A DNA stretch of 64,000 nucleotides, taken from the sequence record NC_014636.1; one strand, given 5' to 3'. The notes under the pieces were generated by a model, which had not been told where the DNA came from, made no database searches, and saw only the letters and a list, made by a program, of their open reading frames with translations. The position numbers were made by a program, and so were the translations under genes. Shown piece after piece: positions 6,339-61,523 of this stretch (within the stretch, counting starts at the first letter, position 1; every line of letters starts with the position of its first letter).

Positions 6339-7136
6339 ATGTTCGCAAGAAATCAAAGCATGTTTGCCCAGCTCGAAACAGGAGCTGGGTACAATAAGAC
6401 TTATCAAGAAAGCGTATTAAATCCTTATGTGAATAAGCATGATTATGATCCAACGCTAACATTACAGGAAATGTTAGTGGCTGAATCGGTGCAAATGAAT
6501 GGTGTTGAGGTATATTATATTAGACGTCAGTTTGTAAAACTAGATCAGTTATTTGGAGAAGACTTACAATCCAAGTTTAAGAAGGCATATAAAGTCGCTA
6601 TGTATTTGGAAAGCTTCGAAGAATATAGTGGACAGAGGGACTTTTTCTCAAAGTTTGGTATGCAAGTTAACGATGAAGTTAGCTTTACAGTCAGTCCCAA
6701 ACTATTTGAGCACCAGACTGATGGAGAACGAGCGAAGGAAGGGGATTTGATTTATTTCCCAATGAATAATAGCTTGTTTGAAATCACATGGGTAGAACCG
6801 ACGTCTCCTATGATCAAACGCGAGAGATTGGCAAAGTATCGTATCACCGCACAGAAATTCATCTACAGTGGCGAAGAAATTAAGCCTGAGTTTGATCCGA
6901 ATCGCTATGTTCTTGATGATACCGATCCGTTTGCTCAAGTTAAAGCACTTGACGGACGAATGGATATCAATCTCGACGAGTTCGAAGAGGACGACGCAAT
7001 CGATGTCGAAGCAGATACGTTTATCGAGGAGTTCGAAAACATTATTGGAACTGGTACTCCTATTGCCGAGCACAATAAGCCGGCTCCAGCGCCAGTTGAT
7101 ATGAAAAATGTGTTCGATGATCTAGAATCGTTTTAA
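6339..7136 (+). CDS. 14: Neck protein gp14
   Basis: LVAESVQMNGVEVYYI, GQRDFFSKFGM, EGDLIYFPMNNSLFEI motifs. Confidence 0.95.
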   Translation: MFARNQSMFAQLETGAGYNKTYQESVLNPYVNKHDYDPTLTLQEMLVAESVQMNGVEVYYIRRQFVKLDQLFGEDLQSKFKKAYKVAMYLESFEEYSGQRDFFSKFGMQVNDEVSFTVSPKLFEHQTDGERAKEGDLIYFPMNNSLFEITWVEPTSPMIKRERLAKYRITAQKFIYSGEEIKPEFDPNRYVLDDTDPFAQVKALDGRMDINLDEFEEDDAIDVEADTFIEEFENIIGTGTPIAEHNKPAPAPVDMKNVFDDLESF

Positions 7137-7744
7137 CAGAGCCCTTCGGGGCTCTTATACGTTGCGCATGACTCACATATTGTATTGCTTTTGATTCGTC
7201 GCAGTGACAGATCAAAACTGCCGTGTGATTTGCAGGTCACTTGATATTGTGTACTTTCGCCGGCCCATCCAGATACTTGTCGAATGGTATATCCATGTCG
7301 TTTAGCATAGTCGGAAGTGATCTTGACTGCAAGATGTTTTGGCTTTTTCTTTTCGATGCCAATACAGACATCACATTTCGGTTTACCGAACATGAGTTCA
7401 CCTATTTTGTTGAACGTCTGATGTCCATTAGGACAGATCAGAACAGCTTCGCTTTGACGATGCCACTCCTCTTTTACCGGAGCAAGATGCAGACTATAGC
7501 CATGATTCACAATCGATCTCATAGCCAAAATCTCGCGTTGTTTAGCGTCGAACTTAAAGCGACGGTCACACCAGCAACGAAGCTTAGGTATCTGATTGAG
7601 ATACGCTTTGAACACAGGTGTGCCTAACCAAGTTTTAGTAGCGCATTCACTACAGGAACAAGCATACACTTTATTGCCGTAGCAGTCAACATGATCTAGT
7701 GATAAAATTTCGAGGTGATTGATTTTTGTACCAATTATGTTCAT
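7133..7744 (-). CDS. Cys/His-rich Zn-finger repeat protein, homing-endonuclease-like but with no recognisable nuclease domain (likely start MNIIGTK at 7744)
   Basis: CSCSEC, CWC, CPNGH..CDVC and CKSH..CESC motifs; antisense insertion in late operon. Confidence 0.6.
   Translation of the reverse strand: MNIIGTKINHLEILSLDHVDCYGNKVYACSCSECATKTWLGTPVFKAYLNQIPKLRCWCDRRFKFDAKQREILAMRSIVNHGYSLHLAPVKEEWHRQSEAVLICPNGHQTFNKIGELMFGKPKCDVCIGIEKKKPKHLAVKITSDYAKRHGYTIRQVSGWAGESTQYQVTCKSHGSFDLSLRRIKSNTICESCATYKSPEGLC
7138..7156. terminator. Hairpin between convergent gp14 and Zn-finger gene
   Basis: AGAGCCC-TTCG-GGGCTCT, UUCG tetraloop. Confidence 0.7.
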
Positions 7745-7756
7745 AAAGTAGACTCT

Positions 7757-7899
7757 TCCAGAAATCGAAGATCGCGCCGTAGGCGCTAACTCATTGAAAT
7801 ATAAGAAAAAGACAAAGTAAATTCTCATTAAAGTATTATAAGAGATTTTATTTTCTCTTTTTGTTACATTTTATTAACATCTAGCGACTAGCGTCGCAG
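7757..7899. repeat. Dispersed structured non-coding element, copy 1 (~140 bp)
   Basis: Near-identical to 45906-46045 with an identical ~58-bp AT-rich core and flanking GC hairpins. Confidence 0.9.
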
Positions 7900-7907
7900 T
7901 GTAAACA

Positions 7908-7914
7908 CTAAATA
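7908..7914 (+). promoter_or_regulatory. Late promoter CTAAATA for gp15
   Basis: Same heptamer upstream of gp19, gp20, gp68, gp22, gp23, uvsW and alt. Confidence 0.75.
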
Positions 7915-23126: not shown

Positions 23127-23525
23127 TTAGCCCGCCAGTGCTGCCGCGAAAGCCATAGACATTGCAGTTTGCGGCTGTACCGGTTTCACAAAATTGGTAC
23201 GCTTTTCCTGCTTCTTAACCGGAGTGTAAGTCCACACTTTACGACGCTGCACTACCTTCACCGGGATTTCAACCGATTCTGTCGGATACACTCGATTATT
23301 ACCGTTAACCACATCGGTTTTCATTACCGGGATTTCAACGGTATCGGCAGCTTCGTTGTCCTCGTCGATCACGGTGATTGTCTTAGCAGCGACGCGAGCG
23401 GCTTCCACTTCTTTGATCCAGCGAGATACGGTACTTGCGGATACGTTGAGTTCGCGAGCGATTTGTGCCTTGGAGGTGCCATTTTCGTTCATGAAATGGG
23501 CTTTGATCTTGGTAGCGTTAGTCAT
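23127..23525 (-). CDS. HTH DNA-binding protein (paralogue 1)
   Basis: SKAQIARELNVSASTVSRW. Confidence 0.8.
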   Translation of the reverse strand: MTNATKIKAHFMNENGTSKAQIARELNVSASTVSRWIKEVEAARVAAKTITVIDEDNEAADTVEIPVMKTDVVNGNNRVYPTESVEIPVKVVQRRKVWTYTPVKKQEKRTNFVKPVQPQTAMSMAFAAALAG

Positions 23526-23550
23526 ATCTAGTTCCTATGTGATCGATTGA

Positions 23551-23778
23551 TTAAGCGGCTTTCTTCGGATTGTTGTATACGTACTTGGCACGACGCTGAA
23601 CTTTACCAGCAAACTGAGCTTCCAGTTTAGCAGCCACTTGTTCACGACGCATTTCATTAACTTTGTCCATGTAGCGACCAACAGTGCGAGGGGAGACATT
23701 CAGCTCGCGAGCAACTTGAGCTTTGGTTTTGTTGGCGGCGGTAACTGCGAAGTAGGCTTTGATTTCGACGTTTTGCAT
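23551..23778 (-). CDS. HTH DNA-binding protein (paralogue 2)
   Basis: TKAQVARELNVSPRTVGRY; RBS GAGGAA. Confidence 0.8.
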   Translation of the reverse strand: MQNVEIKAYFAVTAANKTKAQVARELNVSPRTVGRYMDKVNEMRREQVAAKLEAQFAGKVQRRAKYVYNNPKKAA

Positions 23779-23784
23779 GATGTA

Positions 23785-23912
23785 TTCCTCAGTTTGTTTG
23801 TTTGATGAATCGCGTTTCGCGTTTCGATGTGGTCATAATAGCAGGTACGGATTTCGATGCAAGCACTTTTTGAAAAAATTATAAAAAAAAAATCCCGCCG
23901 GAGCGGGATTCT
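23785..23912 (-). promoter_or_regulatory. Terminator-UP-element-promoter-RBS cassette (PeSL-like), copy A
   Basis: AATCCCGC-NNNN-GCGGGATT stem with poly-U, A/T tracts, TTGCAT-N16-TATTAT, shared leader GACCACATCGAAAC, GAGGAA RBS. Confidence 0.8.
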
Positions 23913-23914
23913 TG

Positions 23915-24478
23915 TCACAGGTAGATCACAGACGATTCGTGGATTCCATCTGGGGAGATATGAACAAACATACTGTTGCGGGGTTCGCGAACAACGACGC
24001 GCATATCGGACTTCTTCATCAGTTCGGCAACGAATTTCTTGAAATCGCTACTTTTTTCTGATTTCAGATCGGCATATTGTGCAGAATCAATGCTGCTAAA
24101 CCAATAGCTGTCATTGACATTGCTCATATTCCATGCCCATGGATACTTATCGCCGACGACATCAAACGCCATTTTGCGCTGTGATGATTGCACAATCGGA
24201 GATTCTTCTTCGATTTCTTCCTCGATTACTTCAACCGGCACAGTTTCGATTACTTCTTGTTTGATTTCTTCTGTGGATTCCGGTTTTTGTTCGACGATGG
24301 GTTCCTTAGTATCAGCTTCTTTCGCTGCTAATGCATCCTCGATTGTTTTAACCATATTGTCAAAGCTCATACTACGCTTGACAACTGCACCAACTTCCAG
24401 CGCATATTTTTCAAGCTCAATCTTGCCTTGCTTGTCGCCTAGTGCGCGGAATGTTTCGATCTTTTGATAATCGACCAT
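23915..24478 (-). CDS. inh: Inh-like prohead protease inhibitor (paralogue 1)
   Basis: N-terminus (MVDYQKIETFRALGDKQGKIELEKYA..VKRSMSFDNMV) and C-terminal VREPRNS resemble T4 Inh; CTAAATA on minus strand at 24522-24528. Confidence 0.7.
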   Translation of the reverse strand: MVDYQKIETFRALGDKQGKIELEKYALEVGAVVKRSMSFDNMVKTIEDALAAKEADTKEPIVEQKPESTEEIKQEVIETVPVEVIEEEIEEESPIVQSSQRKMAFDVVGDKYPWAWNMSNVNDSYWFSSIDSAQYADLKSEKSSDFKKFVAELMKKSDMRVVVREPRNSMFVHISPDGIHESSVIYL

Positions 24479-45747: not shown

Positions 45748-45905
45748 TTTCTTCTCCTATTTGTTTGGAATAGAAAGATACCTTTTTCTACACACTTCCT
45801 TAGTTGAGTTTGATTGATGATTGCCAAGCGATTATTACATCAAGATACCGATCTGTCAACACTATTTTCTGGTAACAGATCGGTTTGATTATAATCTATA
45901 CACGT

Positions 45906-46045
45906 TCAGAAATCGAAGATCGCGGCGTAGCCGCTAACTTATTGATCTCCAAAGAAAAGACAAAGTAAATTCTCATTAAAGTATTATAAGAGATTTTATT
46001 TTCTCTTTTTGTAACATCTTCTTAACTAGCGACTGGCGTCGCCGT
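45906..46045. repeat. Dispersed structured non-coding element, copy 2
   Basis: Same orientation and same ~58-bp core as 7757-7899. Confidence 0.9.
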
Positions 46046-46343
46046 CTTCGACGTCTACACATTTCGGTTCTTTAAGATCTTTCCGATAGTGACAGATTAC
46101 CTCATTTTGTTTCTTGACATAACCAAACACTCGTTCAAGCCAGATTCGGTATCTAACTGAGTCATCATAGCTCATTGCTACGTAAGGTTTTCCCTCGTCT
46201 AGGATAACTCGCCACTCTGGCTTGTATGTCTCCACTGTTTCTGGTAGTGGAGGATGATAAACAACAGGCTTAATTTGCTCTGCTGTAGATGCGCATCCAC
46301 CCAACAGTAAAGTTAGGCCGACCATCGCATATTTCATTTGCAT
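46026..46343 (-). CDS. pseT.2: Outer-membrane spanin (o-spanin, PseT.2-like)
   Basis: Lipobox LLLGGC; Pro-rich segment; overlaps i-spanin end. Confidence 0.85.
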   Translation of the reverse strand: MQMKYAMVGLTLLLGGCASTAEQIKPVVYHPPLPETVETYKPEWRVILDEGKPYVAMSYDDSVRYRIWLERVFGYVKKQNEVICHYRKDLKEPKCVDVEDGDASR

Positions 46344-49119: not shown

Positions 49120-49860
49120 TTACGAAATCTTCCGATAATCATCGCCTAGTTGAGCGATTTGTTTCTCGTAGCCATTAATTGTTTCTTGTCTACGGCGGAT
49201 TTCATCTTGTAGTTGTTCGATAACGCCTCGTTGGGCCTTGATCTGAGACTGTTTAGTCGAGATCTTATCCATGATCGATGTCCGCTCTTGTTCCTTCTCA
49301 CCATACTTGGCAATAACTTGCTTGATGGTCAAGTTGCTGGCATCAATGCCATGTCTCCAGCAGAACTCCAGAGCGGTTTTAAGCTGTGATTCGTCTACTG
49401 GTTGAACTGCCTCAATGAAGAAACGCATTTCACTTGGAACGATAATCGGCATAGAGAGGCGAACGACTTCACCATCGCAATTGACGACCTTTGTCACCGC
49501 GCCGAGATTGTTCATTGCATCAACGCGAAACGGCTTTTTCAGATACTCGACGAACGAACGATTTTGAGGAGATACAGAAAAAGCACGTATCGAGTTTTCG
49601 TTTTCGAATTTGTAATATTTGCCGATTTCCATCGTGCGATCAACTCGGATCGCTACCTTTTCAATGTCCGAGATTTTAACACCAGGACACGGTACGATTT
49701 TTTGGGATGAACAGAAAACGAGTTCATAAACCATGCCGTTGTTGTCTTTACGGGGAACGAATTCCCCGTCGGCAGCACTGAACATTTTCACGAACGCGGT
49801 AAGCGATTTATTCAATCGACCTTTGTTCGGGATATGCTCTTTGATTTTGTAGCTTATCAC
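49120..49860 (-). CDS. Hypothetical protein with C-terminal coiled coil
   Basis: Long ORF; MEIGKYYKF motif shared with neighbours. Confidence 0.65.
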   Translation of the reverse strand: MISYKIKEHIPNKGRLNKSLTAFVKMFSAADGEFVPRKDNNGMVYELVFCSSQKIVPCPGVKISDIEKVAIRVDRTMEIGKYYKFENENSIRAFSVSPQNRSFVEYLKKPFRVDAMNNLGAVTKVVNCDGEVVRLSMPIIVPSEMRFFIEAVQPVDESQLKTALEFCWRHGIDASNLTIKQVIAKYGEKEQERTSIMDKISTKQSQIKAQRGVIEQLQDEIRRRQETINGYEKQIAQLGDDYRKIS

Positions 49861-51506: not shown

Positions 51507-51521
51507 ATAATAACTCCATAA

Positions 51522-51546
51522 GAAAAATCCCGCCGAAGCGGGATTC
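51522..51546 (-). terminator. Terminator hairpin of the cassette family (UUCG loop)
   Basis: AATCCCGC-CGAA-GCGGGATT with A-tract. Confidence 0.85.
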
Positions 51547-51548
51547 GA

Positions 51549-52601
51549 TTAAATGCCTGTGAAATACTGAATGATTTCATAATGATCATCAAAGAAGTTG
51601 TGACGATTGCGGCGTACCATGTGCATTGGCATCCAGAATACATCGCGAACTTCATCGCGCGGCTTAACCGCTGGCAGTTTACCATCAGCATCGGGTTGCA
51701 GTTCGATATACAGAGCCAGAGTCGGTTTGCAGATCGGATAGCTACGTCCCGGATAGTCGAAAATCTTCTCTTTCTTGACCGAACCACGAATTACGCGCTC
51801 CGGCACTTTAAGACGTACTTCCTCGCGCAGTTCGCGAATCGCACATTCTTTATAGGTCTCGTCTTCATTCTTGTGACCACCAGGCAGTGCATACGCACCC
51901 AAACCAGGAAGATTACCACGAATTGTAACGAGCAGGTGACCATTGCAAGTAACGACGGCATCACCAGTAGAGCAGTTCAGAGCCTCACGATATGGATACG
52001 CTTCCATCTTCTTGAGTTCTTTTTTGTTGTGCTGATGTTCTTTAGCCAGTCGATTGTATTCTTCTGCTTTCTTGACTTTGTAGGATTTCAGCCAAGCAAT
52101 CACACCCGGAGTAACGATCTCGCTGTGCAGACTTTCAAAGTCAAATGCAGGATCAAAGAAAGAATCACGGATGAAAGTTGCACTGATCGGCTTACCGTTG
52201 TGCATCTGACATTCGATCTCAGTCAGTTCCCAGCCAAAAGTCTCCAGCCACCAACTGTTCTTGTCTTTCTTGTTACCAACCATGGTGATCTTGTCGCCCA
52301 TTTGTTCGTCTACCGCGTCGCGGATATCAGCTTGCCAACGTTCGTTGGTGTAATTGCTGTCATCCACATAACGGAAGTATACATCGTTCGGATTCAGACC
52401 GTAGTCTTTCATCGCGACACGAAGCATTGCCTCACGTTCAGCAGGACGGAATGGGTTTTTCATATTCGGAAACGCATTCGCAGAACCCAGGATGATGTAT
52501 ACCTTTTGTGCAACGCTCATTGCAACGCGAATCATTTCCAGATGGCCGATGTGGTTGATTTGATACCGACCGTTTACTACAGCTTTGTCATACATTTTCA
52601 T
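51549..52601 (-). CDS. Bifunctional NMN adenylyltransferase / Nudix (ADP-ribose) hydrolase, NadM-Nudix/NatV type
   Basis: GRYQINHIGH (HxGH), KNPF; Nudix box GGHKNEDETYKECAIRELREEV; FFDDHYEII. Confidence 0.92.
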   Translation of the reverse strand: MKMYDKAVVNGRYQINHIGHLEMIRVAMSVAQKVYIILGSANAFPNMKNPFRPAEREAMLRVAMKDYGLNPNDVYFRYVDDSNYTNERWQADIRDAVDEQMGDKITMVGNKKDKNSWWLETFGWELTEIECQMHNGKPISATFIRDSFFDPAFDFESLHSEIVTPGVIAWLKSYKVKKAEEYNRLAKEHQHNKKELKKMEAYPYREALNCSTGDAVVTCNGHLLVTIRGNLPGLGAYALPGGHKNEDETYKECAIRELREEVRLKVPERVIRGSVKKEKIFDYPGRSYPICKPTLALYIELQPDADGKLPAVKPRDEVRDVFWMPMHMVRRNRHNFFDDHYEIIQYFTGI

Positions 52602-55191: not shown

Positions 55192-55197
55192 GATGTT

Positions 55198-55292
55198 TTC
55201 TCAGTGTTTCGTTTCGATGTGGCTATAATAACAGGCTCATGTCTCGATGCAAGCACTTTTGAAAAAAAAAATCCCGCCGAAGCGGGATTCTT
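55198..55292 (-). promoter_or_regulatory. Terminator-promoter cassette (PeSL-like), copy B
   Basis: UUCG terminator 55270-55289; TTGCAT-N16-TATTAT; leader CCACATCGAAACGAAACACTGAG. Confidence 0.8.
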
Positions 55293-55294
55293 GA

Positions 55295-55864
55295 TTAACG
55301 GAGTTTGATAGTCTTGGCTTCACCGGTTTCGAAAGCTTCGTTGGTTTCTTTGTCAAGAACAATCTTACACAGAGAATCAACGTCTTTCTTTGGGAAACCC
55401 GCGAGTCGAGACATAAAGCCAGACATCACGAAGTTACGTTGGTTTTCATAGCCACCACAAACATCCAGCTTCTTATCTTGGCTCAGTTTGAACTCATTGC
55501 GACCAGCTTCCATAGCAACTTGCAGACTCTTATACATGCTGGAATCGAACGGCAGATTATTTTCAGTCATGAACTGAGTAACAGCCTTTGACCCGTCTTT
55601 ACCGTAGCGACCCTGGAAAGTTGCGTCGATTACTTTTTTCAGATCTGCGGTATACATTTCTGGAATCTGTGCCATATCACGAATCTTGAGAGTATACGCG
55701 CTCAGAGTGTTCTGGCTCGCTTTGTGGAACTTCTCGATATTCGTTTCGAACTGAGTATTGGTATTCGAGGTACTGACGTACATCCCAACAAAGCCCAGTA
55801 CAGGAACAACAATCAGACCGATAACCAGAACCAGAACAGCAATCAGAGTTTTATTCATTTTCAT
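55295..55864 (-). CDS. LemA-like membrane-anchored helical protein
   Basis: Single N-terminal TM, then YVSTSN...helical bundle...SRLAGFP-type C-terminus; start uncertain. Confidence 0.55.
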   Translation of the reverse strand: MKMNKTLIAVLVLVIGLIVVPVLGFVGMYVSTSNTNTQFETNIEKFHKASQNTLSAYTLKIRDMAQIPEMYTADLKKVIDATFQGRYGKDGSKAVTQFMTENNLPFDSSMYKSLQVAMEAGRNEFKLSQDKKLDVCGGYENQRNFVMSGFMSRLAGFPKKDVDSLCKIVLDKETNEAFETGEAKTIKLR

Positions 55865-59025: not shown

Positions 59026-59282
59026 TATGCTGCCTTTTTGTTTTGACGACGGGTTACAGTGCTCGGCTTGGTGCCAACGAATATCACTTTCTTGGTACCA
59101 CGCTTGATGCCAGCGAACTTCTTTTCCAGGTCGGCGGCGATTTGAGCTTTAACAGCTTCGCGGCCTTGTTCTACCCAGCGACCGATGGTACGAGGAGATA
59201 CATCCATGTCACGGGCGACTTGAGCTTTGGTAACTTGCTTGCGAACTACAGAAACATAAGCTTGGATTTGAACGTTTTTCAT
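59025..59282 (-). CDS. HTH DNA-binding protein (paralogue 3; start MKNVQIQ)
   Basis: TKAQVARDMDVSPRTIGRW; 5' leader GAGGAATACATCATG identical to that of 23551-23778. Confidence 0.8.
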   Translation of the reverse strand: MKNVQIQAYVSVVRKQVTKAQVARDMDVSPRTIGRWVEQGREAVKAQIAADLEKKFAGIKRGTKKVIFVGTKPSTVTRRQNKKAA

Positions 59283-59287
59283 GATGT

Positions 59288-59375
59288 ATTCCTCAGTTTT
59301 GTTTGGAAGACTGTTTCGTCTTGATGTGGTCATAATAACAGGTACTAGGACCACGTCAACTACTTTTTCAAACTT
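59288..59375 (-). promoter_or_regulatory. Cassette-type early promoter with 11-bp inverted repeat enclosing -10
   Basis: TTGACG-N16-TATTAT; TTGATGTGGTC (59321-31) and GACCACGTCAA (59349-59), 10/11 match. Confidence 0.75.
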
Positions 59376-59376
59376 T

Positions 59377-60263: not shown

Positions 60264-60269
60264 AATCAT

Positions 60270-60362
60270 TTCCTCAGTGTTTCGTTTCGATGTGGTCATA
60301 ATAACAGGTAGAAACCAAGACGCAAGCACTTTTGAAAAAAAATCCCGCCGAAGCGGGATTTT
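60270..60362 (-). promoter_or_regulatory. Terminator-promoter cassette (PeSL-like), copy C
   Basis: UUCG terminator 60341-60360; TTGCGT-N16-TATTAT; leader GACCACATCGAAACGAAACACTGAGG. Confidence 0.8.
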
Positions 60363-60365
60363 TGA

Positions 60366-61523
60366 TTAGTAACCTTGTGGTACGAATTTCTCTGGATACT
60401 TCTTGATAACAGCCACGATTTCATCTGCCAGACTGAAATCAGGACGAGTGCTGAACATCTGCATGGCGATGTTGAACCAGTGACGCTCGTTCTTGAATTC
60501 ATTGGTCATGCTGATGGCATACTCGCGACGCTCCAGTGCCTTATACTTCGAATAAGCGTTGGTCAGTGCCTGCATTGCAGAGCTAACGACATCACGGAAC
60601 TTGGCATCAAACACTTCGATTTTTGCCAGACTGTTCGGATCGTCTCGGAACATTTGACGCAGGTCATCGGTGGCGTTTTCAGCACAAGCAGAAATCAGGC
60701 GCTTGCTGTCATTGATGCTGTCTTTGGTATGATGCAGAGCGACATACCAGTCGGTTTTCAGCTTGAACATTTGGTAATCTTCCATAACTACCACGTAACC
60801 TTCGATACCAGTCATGCCGTAAACGTTCTTGATCCACTCGGCACCATCTTGCGGAACTTCATAGAAATCAGCAGCATATTTGCGGAACACACTGTCTTTT
60901 TGCAGTTCGGCAAAATCAACGTATTCGCCGGTTTCGTTGTGACGGATGTTCAGAATGCGCAGTTGATGATCGGTATAGCACAGAACGATTTGGTTATGCG
61001 GTGCAGTCCACTCCATGTTGACAGTGAAACCTTCTTTCGCATAAGCACGGCAGAATTCCAGCAGATCTGCTTGATCGTCTTGATACAGCCAAACGCTGGC
61101 ATCATTGGCTTGATTGCTGCGAATGGAGCCTTTGGACTTGAGAAGCAGATTATCAACGTCCATGAAAGTGCTGATCAGAGAGCCGTCGCGCTTGTCGATA
61201 ACAAACTTGATCTTGCTCAGATCTGGCATTTTCATGTTGCCGTGAGTTTCTAGCTTTTCCCAGCCGATAACTTCGCTGTAGTTGAAGAATTTGTCCATCG
61301 GACGACTCATGATACGAACCGGAATTTCGCCGTTCATTTCGAACATGATGCCACGACAAGCCATTGCGTCTGGACGAATCCAATCGTTATATCCGGCAAC
61401 GTGATAATCGAAAATTCGAACTTTAGTACCGAGGGAGGTCACGGTCTCGGAGAAAAAGAATTTGGTGTTGTCGTCAACACACAGGTTAACCAGATTTTGA
61501 TACAGTTCTTTGATACTTTGCAT
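60366..61523 (-). CDS. rnlA: RNA ligase 1
   Basis: CRGIMFE, KFFN, motif I DKRDGSLI, TVNMEW, IEGYV, MFKLKTDWY. Confidence 0.95.
   Translation of the reverse strand: MQSIKELYQNLVNLCVDDNTKFFFSETVTSLGTKVRIFDYHVAGYNDWIRPDAMACRGIMFEMNGEIPVRIMSRPMDKFFNYSEVIGWEKLETHGNMKMPDLSKIKFVIDKRDGSLISTFMDVDNLLLKSKGSIRSNQANDASVWLYQDDQADLLEFCRAYAKEGFTVNMEWTAPHNQIVLCYTDHQLRILNIRHNETGEYVDFAELQKDSVFRKYAADFYEVPQDGAEWIKNVYGMTGIEGYVVVMEDYQMFKLKTDWYVALHHTKDSINDSKRLISACAENATDDLRQMFRDDPNSLAKIEVFDAKFRDVVSSAMQALTNAYSKYKALERREYAISMTNEFKNERHWFNIAMQMFSTRPDFSLADEIVAVIKKYPEKFVPQGY

Follow-up and report, generated by a model that had tools for sequence, protein, structure and literature searches.

The stretch of DNA analyzed here, hereafter the window, corresponds to bases 1-64000 of Aeromonas phage phiAS5 (NC_014636, 225,268 bp; Straboviridae, Chrysonvirus), and it contains two copies of an element in which a long AT-rich imperfect palindrome is set between short GC hairpins. 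A search of the whole genome found exactly seven copies of this element, every one of them intergenic; they are spaced more evenly than random around the circularly permuted map, their cores are among the least stable loci of the genome, and compensatory changes in the relatives of phiAS5 support a fold maintained under selection. Regarding the function, a tentative preference is given to a cis-acting site for DNA unwinding or replication initiation, with the seven copies possibly acting as a set of dispersed origins.

An earlier note on the window had reported a structured non-coding element duplicated 38 kb away, with the same AT-rich core between GC hairpins in both copies. This description was confirmed: the longest run identical in both copies measured 58 nt (7807-7864 and 45955-46012), and a 37-nt core probe had two matches in the window, namely, copies 1 and 2, with 0.00 expected from 100 shuffles. 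The two-sided swap in the stem of hairpin 1 proved real, the copies of hairpin 2 differed in the loop alone (Table 1), and the core was indeed an imperfect palindrome, with 7806-7821 and 7847-7862 complementary at 14 of 16 positions. The limits assigned to the element were right for the part described and somewhat too short, as it includes hairpin 3 on the right and a box to the left of hairpin 1; copy 1 spans 7757-7912 and copy 2 45906-46057. Similarly, both copies were genuine, and speaking of a duplication was incomplete, since they are two of the seven in the genome. Both strands of the element folded much better than shuffles, and the z-scores against dinucleotide shuffles were -5.0 for copy 1 and -2.8 for copy 2.

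As for its distribution, a BLAST run against 50,697 phage records matched the element in Aeromonas phages only, with phiAS5 at 100% identity and with matching coordinates. PX29 (Angelvirus) has seven copies at sites that the comparison of the flanks found identical to those of phiAS5; Aeh1 and Ah1 (Cinqassovirus) have eight each, the extra one forming a tandem pair at the gp26 site, which has a single copy in phiAS5 and PX29. These four phages have the seven sites in common, along with the genes on either side. The members of the tandem pair are ~175 nt apart, with a GTTTACA-type box between them (L061:8747-9076 in Aeh1, L028:3960-4299 in Ah1). A degenerate core pattern occurred in four of 2.9 million viral contigs (IMG/VR), corresponding to phiAS5, Aeh1, Ah1, and PX29, and in metagenome contigs it returned chance singletons only. 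Identity among the copies was 86-93% inside one genome and ~76% between genera, and this higher identity inside a genome than between genera indicates concerted evolution. At three orthologous sites the element was retained with its orientation flipped: at the ndd site, phiAS5 and PX29 are opposite to Aeh1 and Ah1; at the site of the 0.6-like gene, phiAS5 is opposite to PX29, Aeh1, and Ah1; and at the Rz1 site, all four are opposite to Ahp1_CNU-2021, a distant phage with a diverged version of the element. The copies were co-oriented with the local transcription in 6 of 7 cases in phiAS5 and in 7 of 7 in Ahp1_CNU-2021.

The anatomy of the family was defined on an alignment of 31 copies from five phages, which is also the basis of the pairing and covariation figures. 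From the left, the modules are an AT-rich box with YCCAGAAA, a GC hairpin of several sequence types, a nearly invariant unpaired block (GCTAACTYATTGAT), and the central hairpin of ~20 bp, which consists of a purine-rich arm, the invariant loop TCAT..AAG NNN TATAAG, and a pyrimidine-rich arm; the length is invariant from GCTAAC through the end of the core. On the right, a spacer of variable length is followed by hairpin 2, present as TAGCGGC-TAC-GCCGCAGT or in the GCGAC/GTCGC version, and by hairpin 3, with GTC/GAC, GTGC/GCAC, GTGT/ACAC, or CGTC/GACG as its stem. The element ends in inverted repeats, with a terminal motif of ~15 nt in many copies; the inverted end motif GAGCGTAGCGA / TCGCTACGCTC is conserved and common even to the version in Ahp1_CNU-2021, and, taken as its reverse complement, hairpin 2 of the Aeh1 copies equals hairpin 1 of copy 2. 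In some copies the ends (left GCGAGCGTAGCGAGC, right GCTCGCTACGCTCGC) are not palindromes themselves and could therefore pair only end-to-end, and not locally. The consensus for IHF (WATCAANNNNTTR, as reverse complement) had an exact match in 21 of the 31 copies, against a background of 0.8% in random 140-nt segments; copy 1 and most PX29 copies have mismatches, and Ahp1_CNU-2021 lacks the match. The alignments showed no conservation of the tiny open reading frames (ORFs) on either strand of the core; in Aeh1 (NC_005260), two small ORFs annotated as hypothetical proteins, 49489-49671 (Aeh1p059) and 230599-230766 (Aeh1p349), coincide with copies of the element and are unlikely to be real genes.

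The central helix comprises 23 pairs and is 93.7% paired; shifting the 3' partners by 1-3 columns lowers this value to 46-64%. Both members were exchanged in four pairs (two from A-U to G-C, one from C-G to G-C, and one from C-G to U-A), and one position runs through the series A-U in Aeh1, G.U in phiAS5, and G-C in PX29; none of 500 shuffles attained the observed pairing or covariation score. Hairpins 2 and 3 covary too, and the fourth stem pair of hairpin 2 switches from G-C to A-U (A-T) across the family. The earlier proposal of a structure under selection is supported by these compensatory changes, as homologues with covariation were found in related Aeromonas phages. Regarding the strand involved, the non-Watson-Crick cells of the sense strand were G.T in 61 cases over 10 column pairs versus A.C in 18 cases over 4 column pairs, the latter mostly at the ragged base of the stem, and the sense strand folded more stably than the antisense in ~25 of the 31 copies. 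The excess of G.T together with the better sense fold suggests that one particular strand folds, either as RNA or as single-stranded DNA; sites with the element turned around with respect to its neighboring genes show this wobble pattern too. In the Aeh1-type copies, the stem is closed by G-C pairs and followed by a U-run.

Ahp1_CNU-2021 (218 kb, unclassified Straboviridae) has a GC-richer element of the same design in its gp14-gp15 gap, which has no inserted ORF, and its genome contains seven copies of this diverged version. The latter has the inverted end motif GGAGCGTAGCGACA / TGTCGCTACGCTCC, the hairpin CCGACC-GTA-GGTCGG, and TCTCTTTAAAGGGTATAAGGAGA as the loop of the long hairpin; it keeps loop, stem, and end motif, and it does not conserve the GCTAAC...TTGAT block or the U-run after the hairpin. 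The best matches in this genome of a hidden Markov model built from the 31 copies were weak, and they corresponded to five of its seven copies in the correct orientation. Five sites are common to Ahp1_CNU-2021 and phiAS5 (gp15, gp26, big ORF, 0.6-like, and Rz1); of the two that differ, one is inside the tail-fiber cluster and the other adjoins a reversed ORF that neighbors the primase gene, and the gp47 and ndd sites have no element. In the Ahp1_CNU-2021 copies (L170:1150-1305 and six others in L188-L192), the C-run in the 3' arm of the long hairpin has two pairing options, the 5' G-run or the following GGGGAG, which gives a CUCCCC-UUCG-GGGGAG tetraloop hairpin; one copy has a compensating CUCC-UAC-GGAG, and the two pairings are possibly mutually exclusive structures. 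In another relative, the phage 65-like Aswh_1, the gp14-gp15 site is without the element: the gap is 45 nt (L171:1280-1325), with a plain G6/C6 hairpin followed by CTAAATA, and on its sequence it is the "empty" form of the site filled in phiAS5.

Turning to the spacing, the gaps around the circularly permuted map of phiAS5 are 38, 44, 25, 19, 40, 30, and 29 kb. Against 100,000 sets of seven gaps drawn at random from the real intergenic ones, they are more even than random in variance (P = 5e-4 to 8e-4), minimum gap (P = 3e-3), and maximum gap (P = 1e-3). In Ahp1_CNU-2021 the gaps are 38, 29, 25, 31, 39, 28, and 28 kb, and the same tests gave P values of 1e-5 to 5e-5; its two differing sites even out the shortest and the longest intervals of phiAS5. 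As for duplex stability, calculated with nearest-neighbor energies over the 225 kb of phiAS5, the seven cores occupy ranks 1, 3, 5, 6, 7, 8, and 10 when the 50-bp loci are ordered from the least stable upward; those of Ahp1_CNU-2021, whose genome has 48% GC, fall in the top 0.03-0.07% of the least stable 40-bp windows.

These data lend circumstantial support to the replication origin that the earlier note had put forward among other ideas, by virtue of the seven evenly spaced copies and of their very unstable cores. According to the preferred reading, each copy would be an easily melted, AT-rich near-palindrome of ~60 bp clamped by short GC hairpin boxes, and the phage would maintain about seven of them, one every ~30 kb, round its circularly permuted genome. 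Transcription of the upstream gene would cross the core, usually in the sense direction of the element, on the model of T4 oriF and oriG; the purine-rich transcript would remain hybridized to the melted core as an R-loop, and the displaced sense strand would fold into the conserved hairpins, which would account for the G.T wobbles of that strand. The resulting fork or hairpin would then serve to load the replicative helicase and primase. The connections to replication, to an R-loop, and to any protein partner are what we infer from these features. Seven evenly spaced sites fit dispersed replication starts, whereas a terminator, a processing site, or a small RNA (sRNA) gene has no reason for such spacing; other chromosome-wide functions might account for it as well. 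The number of copies, which stays at seven in Ahp1_CNU-2021 despite the two differing sites, was also counted in favor of origins.

The closest comparison is with T4, whose origins form a transcript R-loop in an essential DNA unwinding element (DUE), with a promoter that becomes dispensable once the R-loop exists; this phage has "at least seven putative origins", five of them active early, with no common sequence motif (PMC3016281). The lack of such a motif means that missing homology to the T4 origins is not evidence against an origin role here. The T4 origins oriF (uvsY) and oriG (gene 34) share with the element the cis-acting nature, the T4-type phage context, an AT-rich, easily unwound stretch met by transcripts, and the occurrence at several dispersed sites; their DUE of ~50 bp has its counterpart in the cores, which rank so low in duplex stability in phiAS5. 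In anatomy, the easily melted AT-rich core, the GC clamps, and the folded sense strand, usually co-oriented with the crossing transcripts, agree with what matters at oriF and oriG. The T4 origins are non-repeated and are defined by a MotA-dependent middle promoter that immediately precedes the DUE, whereas the phiAS5 sites are copies of one palindrome with GC hairpins and would be candidate origins. Several points weigh against this role. The repeat has no conserved promoter firing into the core, and the seven sites are not syntenic with the T4 origin landmarks soc, rI.-1, repEA, uvsY, and gene 34; the wobble bias and the co-orientation at most sites suit an RNA function equally. Moreover, the spacing statistic was noticed post hoc, the two genomes tested have five of the seven sites in common by descent, and low stability is expected of AT-rich non-coding DNA whatever its role. 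The bolder version of the proposal is more doubtful than the general one: the elements would be the replication origins of the Aeh1-like phages and the first in the T4 family with a shared sequence, held by selection at ~30 kb spacing and perhaps served by a dedicated initiator or loader, a CapR-type DNA-binding protein that would stem from a homing endonuclease.

Several of the same observations would suit an RNA cis-element in read-through polycistronic transcripts, a rather unlikely alternative in which the AU-rich hairpin would be a processing site (e.g., for RNase III) or a weak two-way terminator, with the GC hairpins shielding both newly formed ends (3' and 5') and insulating adjacent transcription units. 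Every copy lies between the end of a gene and the promoter of the next, the sense-strand helices covary through the A-U/G.U/G-C series, the sense RNA outfolds the antisense in most of the alignment, the copies largely follow the direction of transcription in both phiAS5 and Ahp1_CNU-2021, and the Aeh1-type stem, with its G-C closing pairs and U-run, points the same way. However, this function leaves the even spacing and the constant number of seven unexplained, and the best-conserved bases are those of the loop and the unpaired ones, which are superfluous for a terminator or an RNase III site; in addition, the Ahp1_CNU-2021 version has no U-run, three sites are antisense to transcription with the same wobble pattern, and the terminator scan did not call the element. 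At the gp47 site, where the copies are already preceded by a canonical terminator, the element sits between this terminator and the next promoter and is therefore needed there as neither. A family of "sibling" sRNA genes, with a minimal promoter in the AT box, the 5' GC hairpin, GCUAACUCAUUGAU as the seed, and the long hairpin as the terminator, is very unlikely. Such an autonomous unit would explain the tolerance to flips and the sense-strand wobbles at inverted sites, and it would make use of the conserved unpaired block, of the hairpin followed by a U-run, and of the AT box at a fixed upstream distance; yet this box matches neither the late promoter CTAAATA nor a full sigma-70 promoter, and it is missing at the gp47 sites and at the 0.6-like site of phiAS5, where the coding region abuts the element. 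Further, the "seed" and the U-run are not conserved in Ahp1_CNU-2021, and neither the spacing nor the presence of hairpins 2 and 3 past the putative terminator is explained. The non-coding RNA suggested in the earlier note thus retains the one-strand G.T bias and the co-orientation at most sites, and is weakened by the finding of no conserved promoter or terminator.

The element could instead be an array of binding sites for a phage protein, such as the CapR-like product of the neighboring gene phiAS5_ORF0008, that regulates or insulates promoters or organizes the chromosome with no role in replication, a reading we regard as distinctly unlikely. It draws on the invariance, even between the diverged families, of the core loop (TCAT..AAG...TATAAG) and of the inverted end motif, on the promoter that follows each copy, and on the presence of a CapR-domain protein beside a copy in phiAS5, Aeh1, and PX29, with a paralogue beside a different copy in Ahp1_CNU-2021. 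CapR is a zinc-finger DNA-binding module of phage homing endonucleases that has been reused in repressors (PMC10448857; bioRxiv 2026.02.23.707548). Nonetheless, both the distance to the promoter and its class (late or early) vary, the match of ORF0008 to CapR is at or below the Pfam threshold (18.6-24.3 versus 24.2 bits), and the compensatory changes point to single-stranded folding and away from a simple duplex site. The proximity of gene and copy may carry meaning, or it may just come from homing-endonuclease-like genes settling in intergenic gaps. Equally remote as the sRNA genes is a selfish or neutral palindromic repeat, similar to REPINs, BIMEs, or MITEs, spread in intergenic gaps, kept uniform by gene conversion, and with no function for the phage. 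The inverted terminal motifs of ~15 nt, the relation between hairpin 1 of copy 2 and hairpin 2 of Aeh1, and the greater identity within a genome than between genera would all agree with it, as would the signs of movement, namely, the tandem pair at gp26 in Aeh1 and Ah1, the three orientation flips, the two differing sites of Ahp1_CNU-2021, and the empty gp14-gp15 site of Aswh_1. On the other hand, the seven sites are identical over three genera, being fixed in phiAS5, PX29, Aeh1, and Ah1 and differing only with respect to the distant Ahp1_CNU-2021 and Aswh_1; there is no consistent target-site duplication, no known transposase, and no match to a repeat of the Aeromonas host; and the invariant length of the core, the compensatory nature of the changes, and the non-random spacing also speak against it. 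The small mobile element of the earlier note is likewise weakened by this synteny and by the lack of target-site duplications. As for the latter, direct repeats flank copies 3, 4, and 7 of phiAS5 only, they were not reproduced at the orthologous Aeh1 copies, and they were taken as chance or as recurrence of promoter motifs.

The element was also compared with known repeats. The PeSL cassettes of T4-type phages are also repeated intergenic stem-loops with a following promoter; they are short composites of a terminator and an early promoter, found at the borders of variable genes in hyperplastic regions (PMC4122927). The element is larger, it has no promoter in its conserved part, the promoter that follows is late or early, and its sites are conserved, some of them in core-gene regions; its identity with a PeSL was rejected on the lack of a promoter in the conserved unit and on the conservation of sites and flanks among close relatives. 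REP, BIME (RIP/RIB), and REPIN sequences resemble it in being intergenic, GC-rich imperfect palindromes inverted around a central segment, with GTA(G)/CTAC at the hairpins. Some BIMEs bind IHF, a property to be compared with the IHF-consensus match of most element copies. They differ from the element, which is phage-borne, has seven copies and not hundreds, includes a long AT-rich core, and loses the IHF match in Ahp1_CNU-2021; to our knowledge, it has no RAYT-type transposase. An origin from host REP sequences was discarded, as the right-end 17-mer had 81 scattered matches in 185,579 genomes, about the number expected by chance, and none in Aeromonas. A MITE-like element fits in part: the terminal inverted repeats are present, but consistent target-site duplications and presence/absence differences among close relatives are not. 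An intrinsic terminator did not fit the AU-rich stem, the absence of the U-run in Ahp1_CNU-2021, and the scan, which called no canonical terminator inside the element. Rfam had no family at its gathering threshold in the whole window, and a permissive scan gave as best match a plant miRNA-precursor hairpin, at 26 bits versus a threshold of 90. In terms of architecture, the origins oriS and oriL of herpes simplex virus are long palindromes with an AT-rich center and inverted GC-richer flanks, and their unwound center can form a hairpin; this likeness is architectural only, with no homology and with unrelated viruses and initiators.

No earlier description of the Aeh1/phiAS5 repeat was found in the searchable literature, the coverage of which is incomplete. 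What defines the T4 origins is a long-standing open question, and a review on T4 states that they have no local sequence motif in common (PMC3016281); T4 relatives in which a single recognizable element, easy to melt and clamped by hairpins, occupies seven evenly spaced positions would render this question directly testable, the more so as number and spacing are preserved even where individual sites are replaced. If the element is not an origin, its even spacing still needs an explanation at the level of the chromosome, such as domain organization, loading of the clamp or helicase, or recombination starts. Independently of its function, the element shows cleanly, in a natural setting, how a structured repeat of a virulent phage evolves in concert and is inverted in place, and its analysis corrects several spurious or over-extended ORF annotations.

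Table 1. Copies of the element in the phiAS5 genome, modules of the two copies in the window, and adjacent features.
Feature	Position	Strand	Remarks
Copy 1, genome	~7.8 kb	+	upstream of gp15
Copy 2, genome	~46.0 kb	+	downstream of Rz1
Copy 7, genome	~89.7 kb	-	upstream of ndd
Copy 6, genome	~115.2 kb	-	upstream of gp47
Copy 5, genome	~134.5 kb	-	upstream of 57-aa "T7 0.6-like" gene
Copy 4, genome	~174.2 kb	-	upstream of 1,183-aa ORF (big ORF), after ADP-ribosylglycohydrolase gene
Copy 3, genome	~204.4 kb	-	upstream of gp26 hub gene
phiAS5_ORF0008, CapR-like protein	7133..7744	-	~203 aa true length; phrog_20519, weak phrog_681/559, near-threshold Pfam CapR
Left extension, copy 1	7744..7770	+	AT-rich box then CTCTTCCAGAAA; fixed distance kept in most of the 31 copies
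GC hairpin 1, copy 1	7774..7786	+	GCGCC-GTA-GGCGC; several stem versions in the family
Conserved unpaired block GCTAACTCATTGA, copy 1	7785..7798	+	one mismatch to IHF consensus in copy 1
Central AT-rich imperfect palindrome (long hairpin), copy 1	7806..7862	+	fold, covariation; instability rank 3
Variable spacer, copy 1	7863..7883	+	0-50 nt in the family (31-copy alignment)
GC hairpin 2, copy 1	7884..7897	+	GCGAC-TAGC-GTCGC
Hairpin 3 (small), copy 1	7898..7909	+	AGTGT-AA-ACACT; 3' arm overlaps late promoter
Late-promoter motif CTAAATA for gp15 (ATG 7934)	7908..7914	+	beyond the repeat proper
Sigma-70-type promoter TTGACA-17-AATAAT with TG	45831..45859	-	strong; serves downstream minus-strand gene; beside copy 2, outside the repeat
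Left box TCAGAAATCGAAGATC, copy 2	45906..45921	+	
GC hairpin 1, copy 2	45922..45934	+	GCGGC-GTA-GCCGC
Central AT-rich palindrome, copy 2	45954..46010	+	fold; instability rank 7
GC hairpin 2, copy 2	46029..46042	+	GCGAC-TGGC-GTCGC; overlaps final codons of minus-strand Rz1-like spanin gene
Hairpin 3, copy 2	46043..46053	+	CGTC-TTC-GACG

Regarding the genes around the two copies in the window, ORF0008 is a reversed ORF inserted between gp14 and gp15; Aeh1 and PX29 have it at this position, Ahp1_CNU-2021 and Aswh_1 lack it, and gp14 and gp15 are adjacent in T4 as in Aswh_1. Its annotated form (7133-7828) overlaps copy 1, the family profile covers it from residue 29 onward, and the start of the Aeh1 homologue falls just beyond the element; read on the minus strand, the left extension of copy 1 provides the ribosome-binding site and the ATG (7744) of this ORF. 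The annotation is probably 28 codons too long, with the true start near 7744, which places copy 1 in intergenic DNA. ORF0008 and the reversed ORF beside the primase gene of Ahp1_CNU-2021 belong to related families (phrog_681, phrog_559, described as endonuclease and HNH endonuclease, phrog_20519, and Pfam CapR); the protein from Ahp1_CNU-2021 matches Pfam CapR with E = 1.7e-16, and the match of ORF0008 is the near-threshold one given above. Judging from this family assignment and its position, ORF0008 may be a DNA-binding partner of the element. Copy 2 lies between the gene of an Rz1-like spanin and a Vs.1/SLT-like gene, both on the minus strand.

As for transcription signals, a promoter follows every copy outside the conserved unit: it is the late type CTAAATA at the gp15, gp26, and big-ORF sites, and one of the early types TTGACA or GTTTACA at the remaining ones. 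The scan called no sigma-70 or MotA-type promoter within the repeat, and most copies would be read through in sense by transcripts from the genes upstream. The motif CTAAATA occurs 14 times on the plus strand of the window (at 7908, 13236, 13798, 15575, 16696, 17527, 28423, 33342, and other positions) and once on the minus strand, and 8 occurrences lie ~25 nt before the starts of late genes; the T4 form of the late promoter, TATAAATA, is absent from the window, and CTAAATA appears to be the late-promoter motif of phiAS5. The AT box on the left of the element resembles this motif with a partial match, and its assignment as a late promoter was rejected on these grounds.

Finally, the window includes a separate family of repeats (23806-23918, 51520-51553, 55196-55297, 59303-59376, and 60269-60368), in which, on the minus strand, the canonical terminator AAAAAATCCCGCCGAAGCGGGATT (AATCCCGC-TTCG-GCGGGATTTTTTTT) is directly followed by a promoter-like sequence (GTGCTTGCA ... 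TATTAT); by this arrangement, it looks like the PeSL-type cassette of phiAS5 itself. Beside these cassettes, the 5' ends of small genes on the minus strand lie in repeated sequences of 43-55 nt (23420-23795, 59177-59299), which suggests either paralogous genes or gene starts shuffled along with the cassette.

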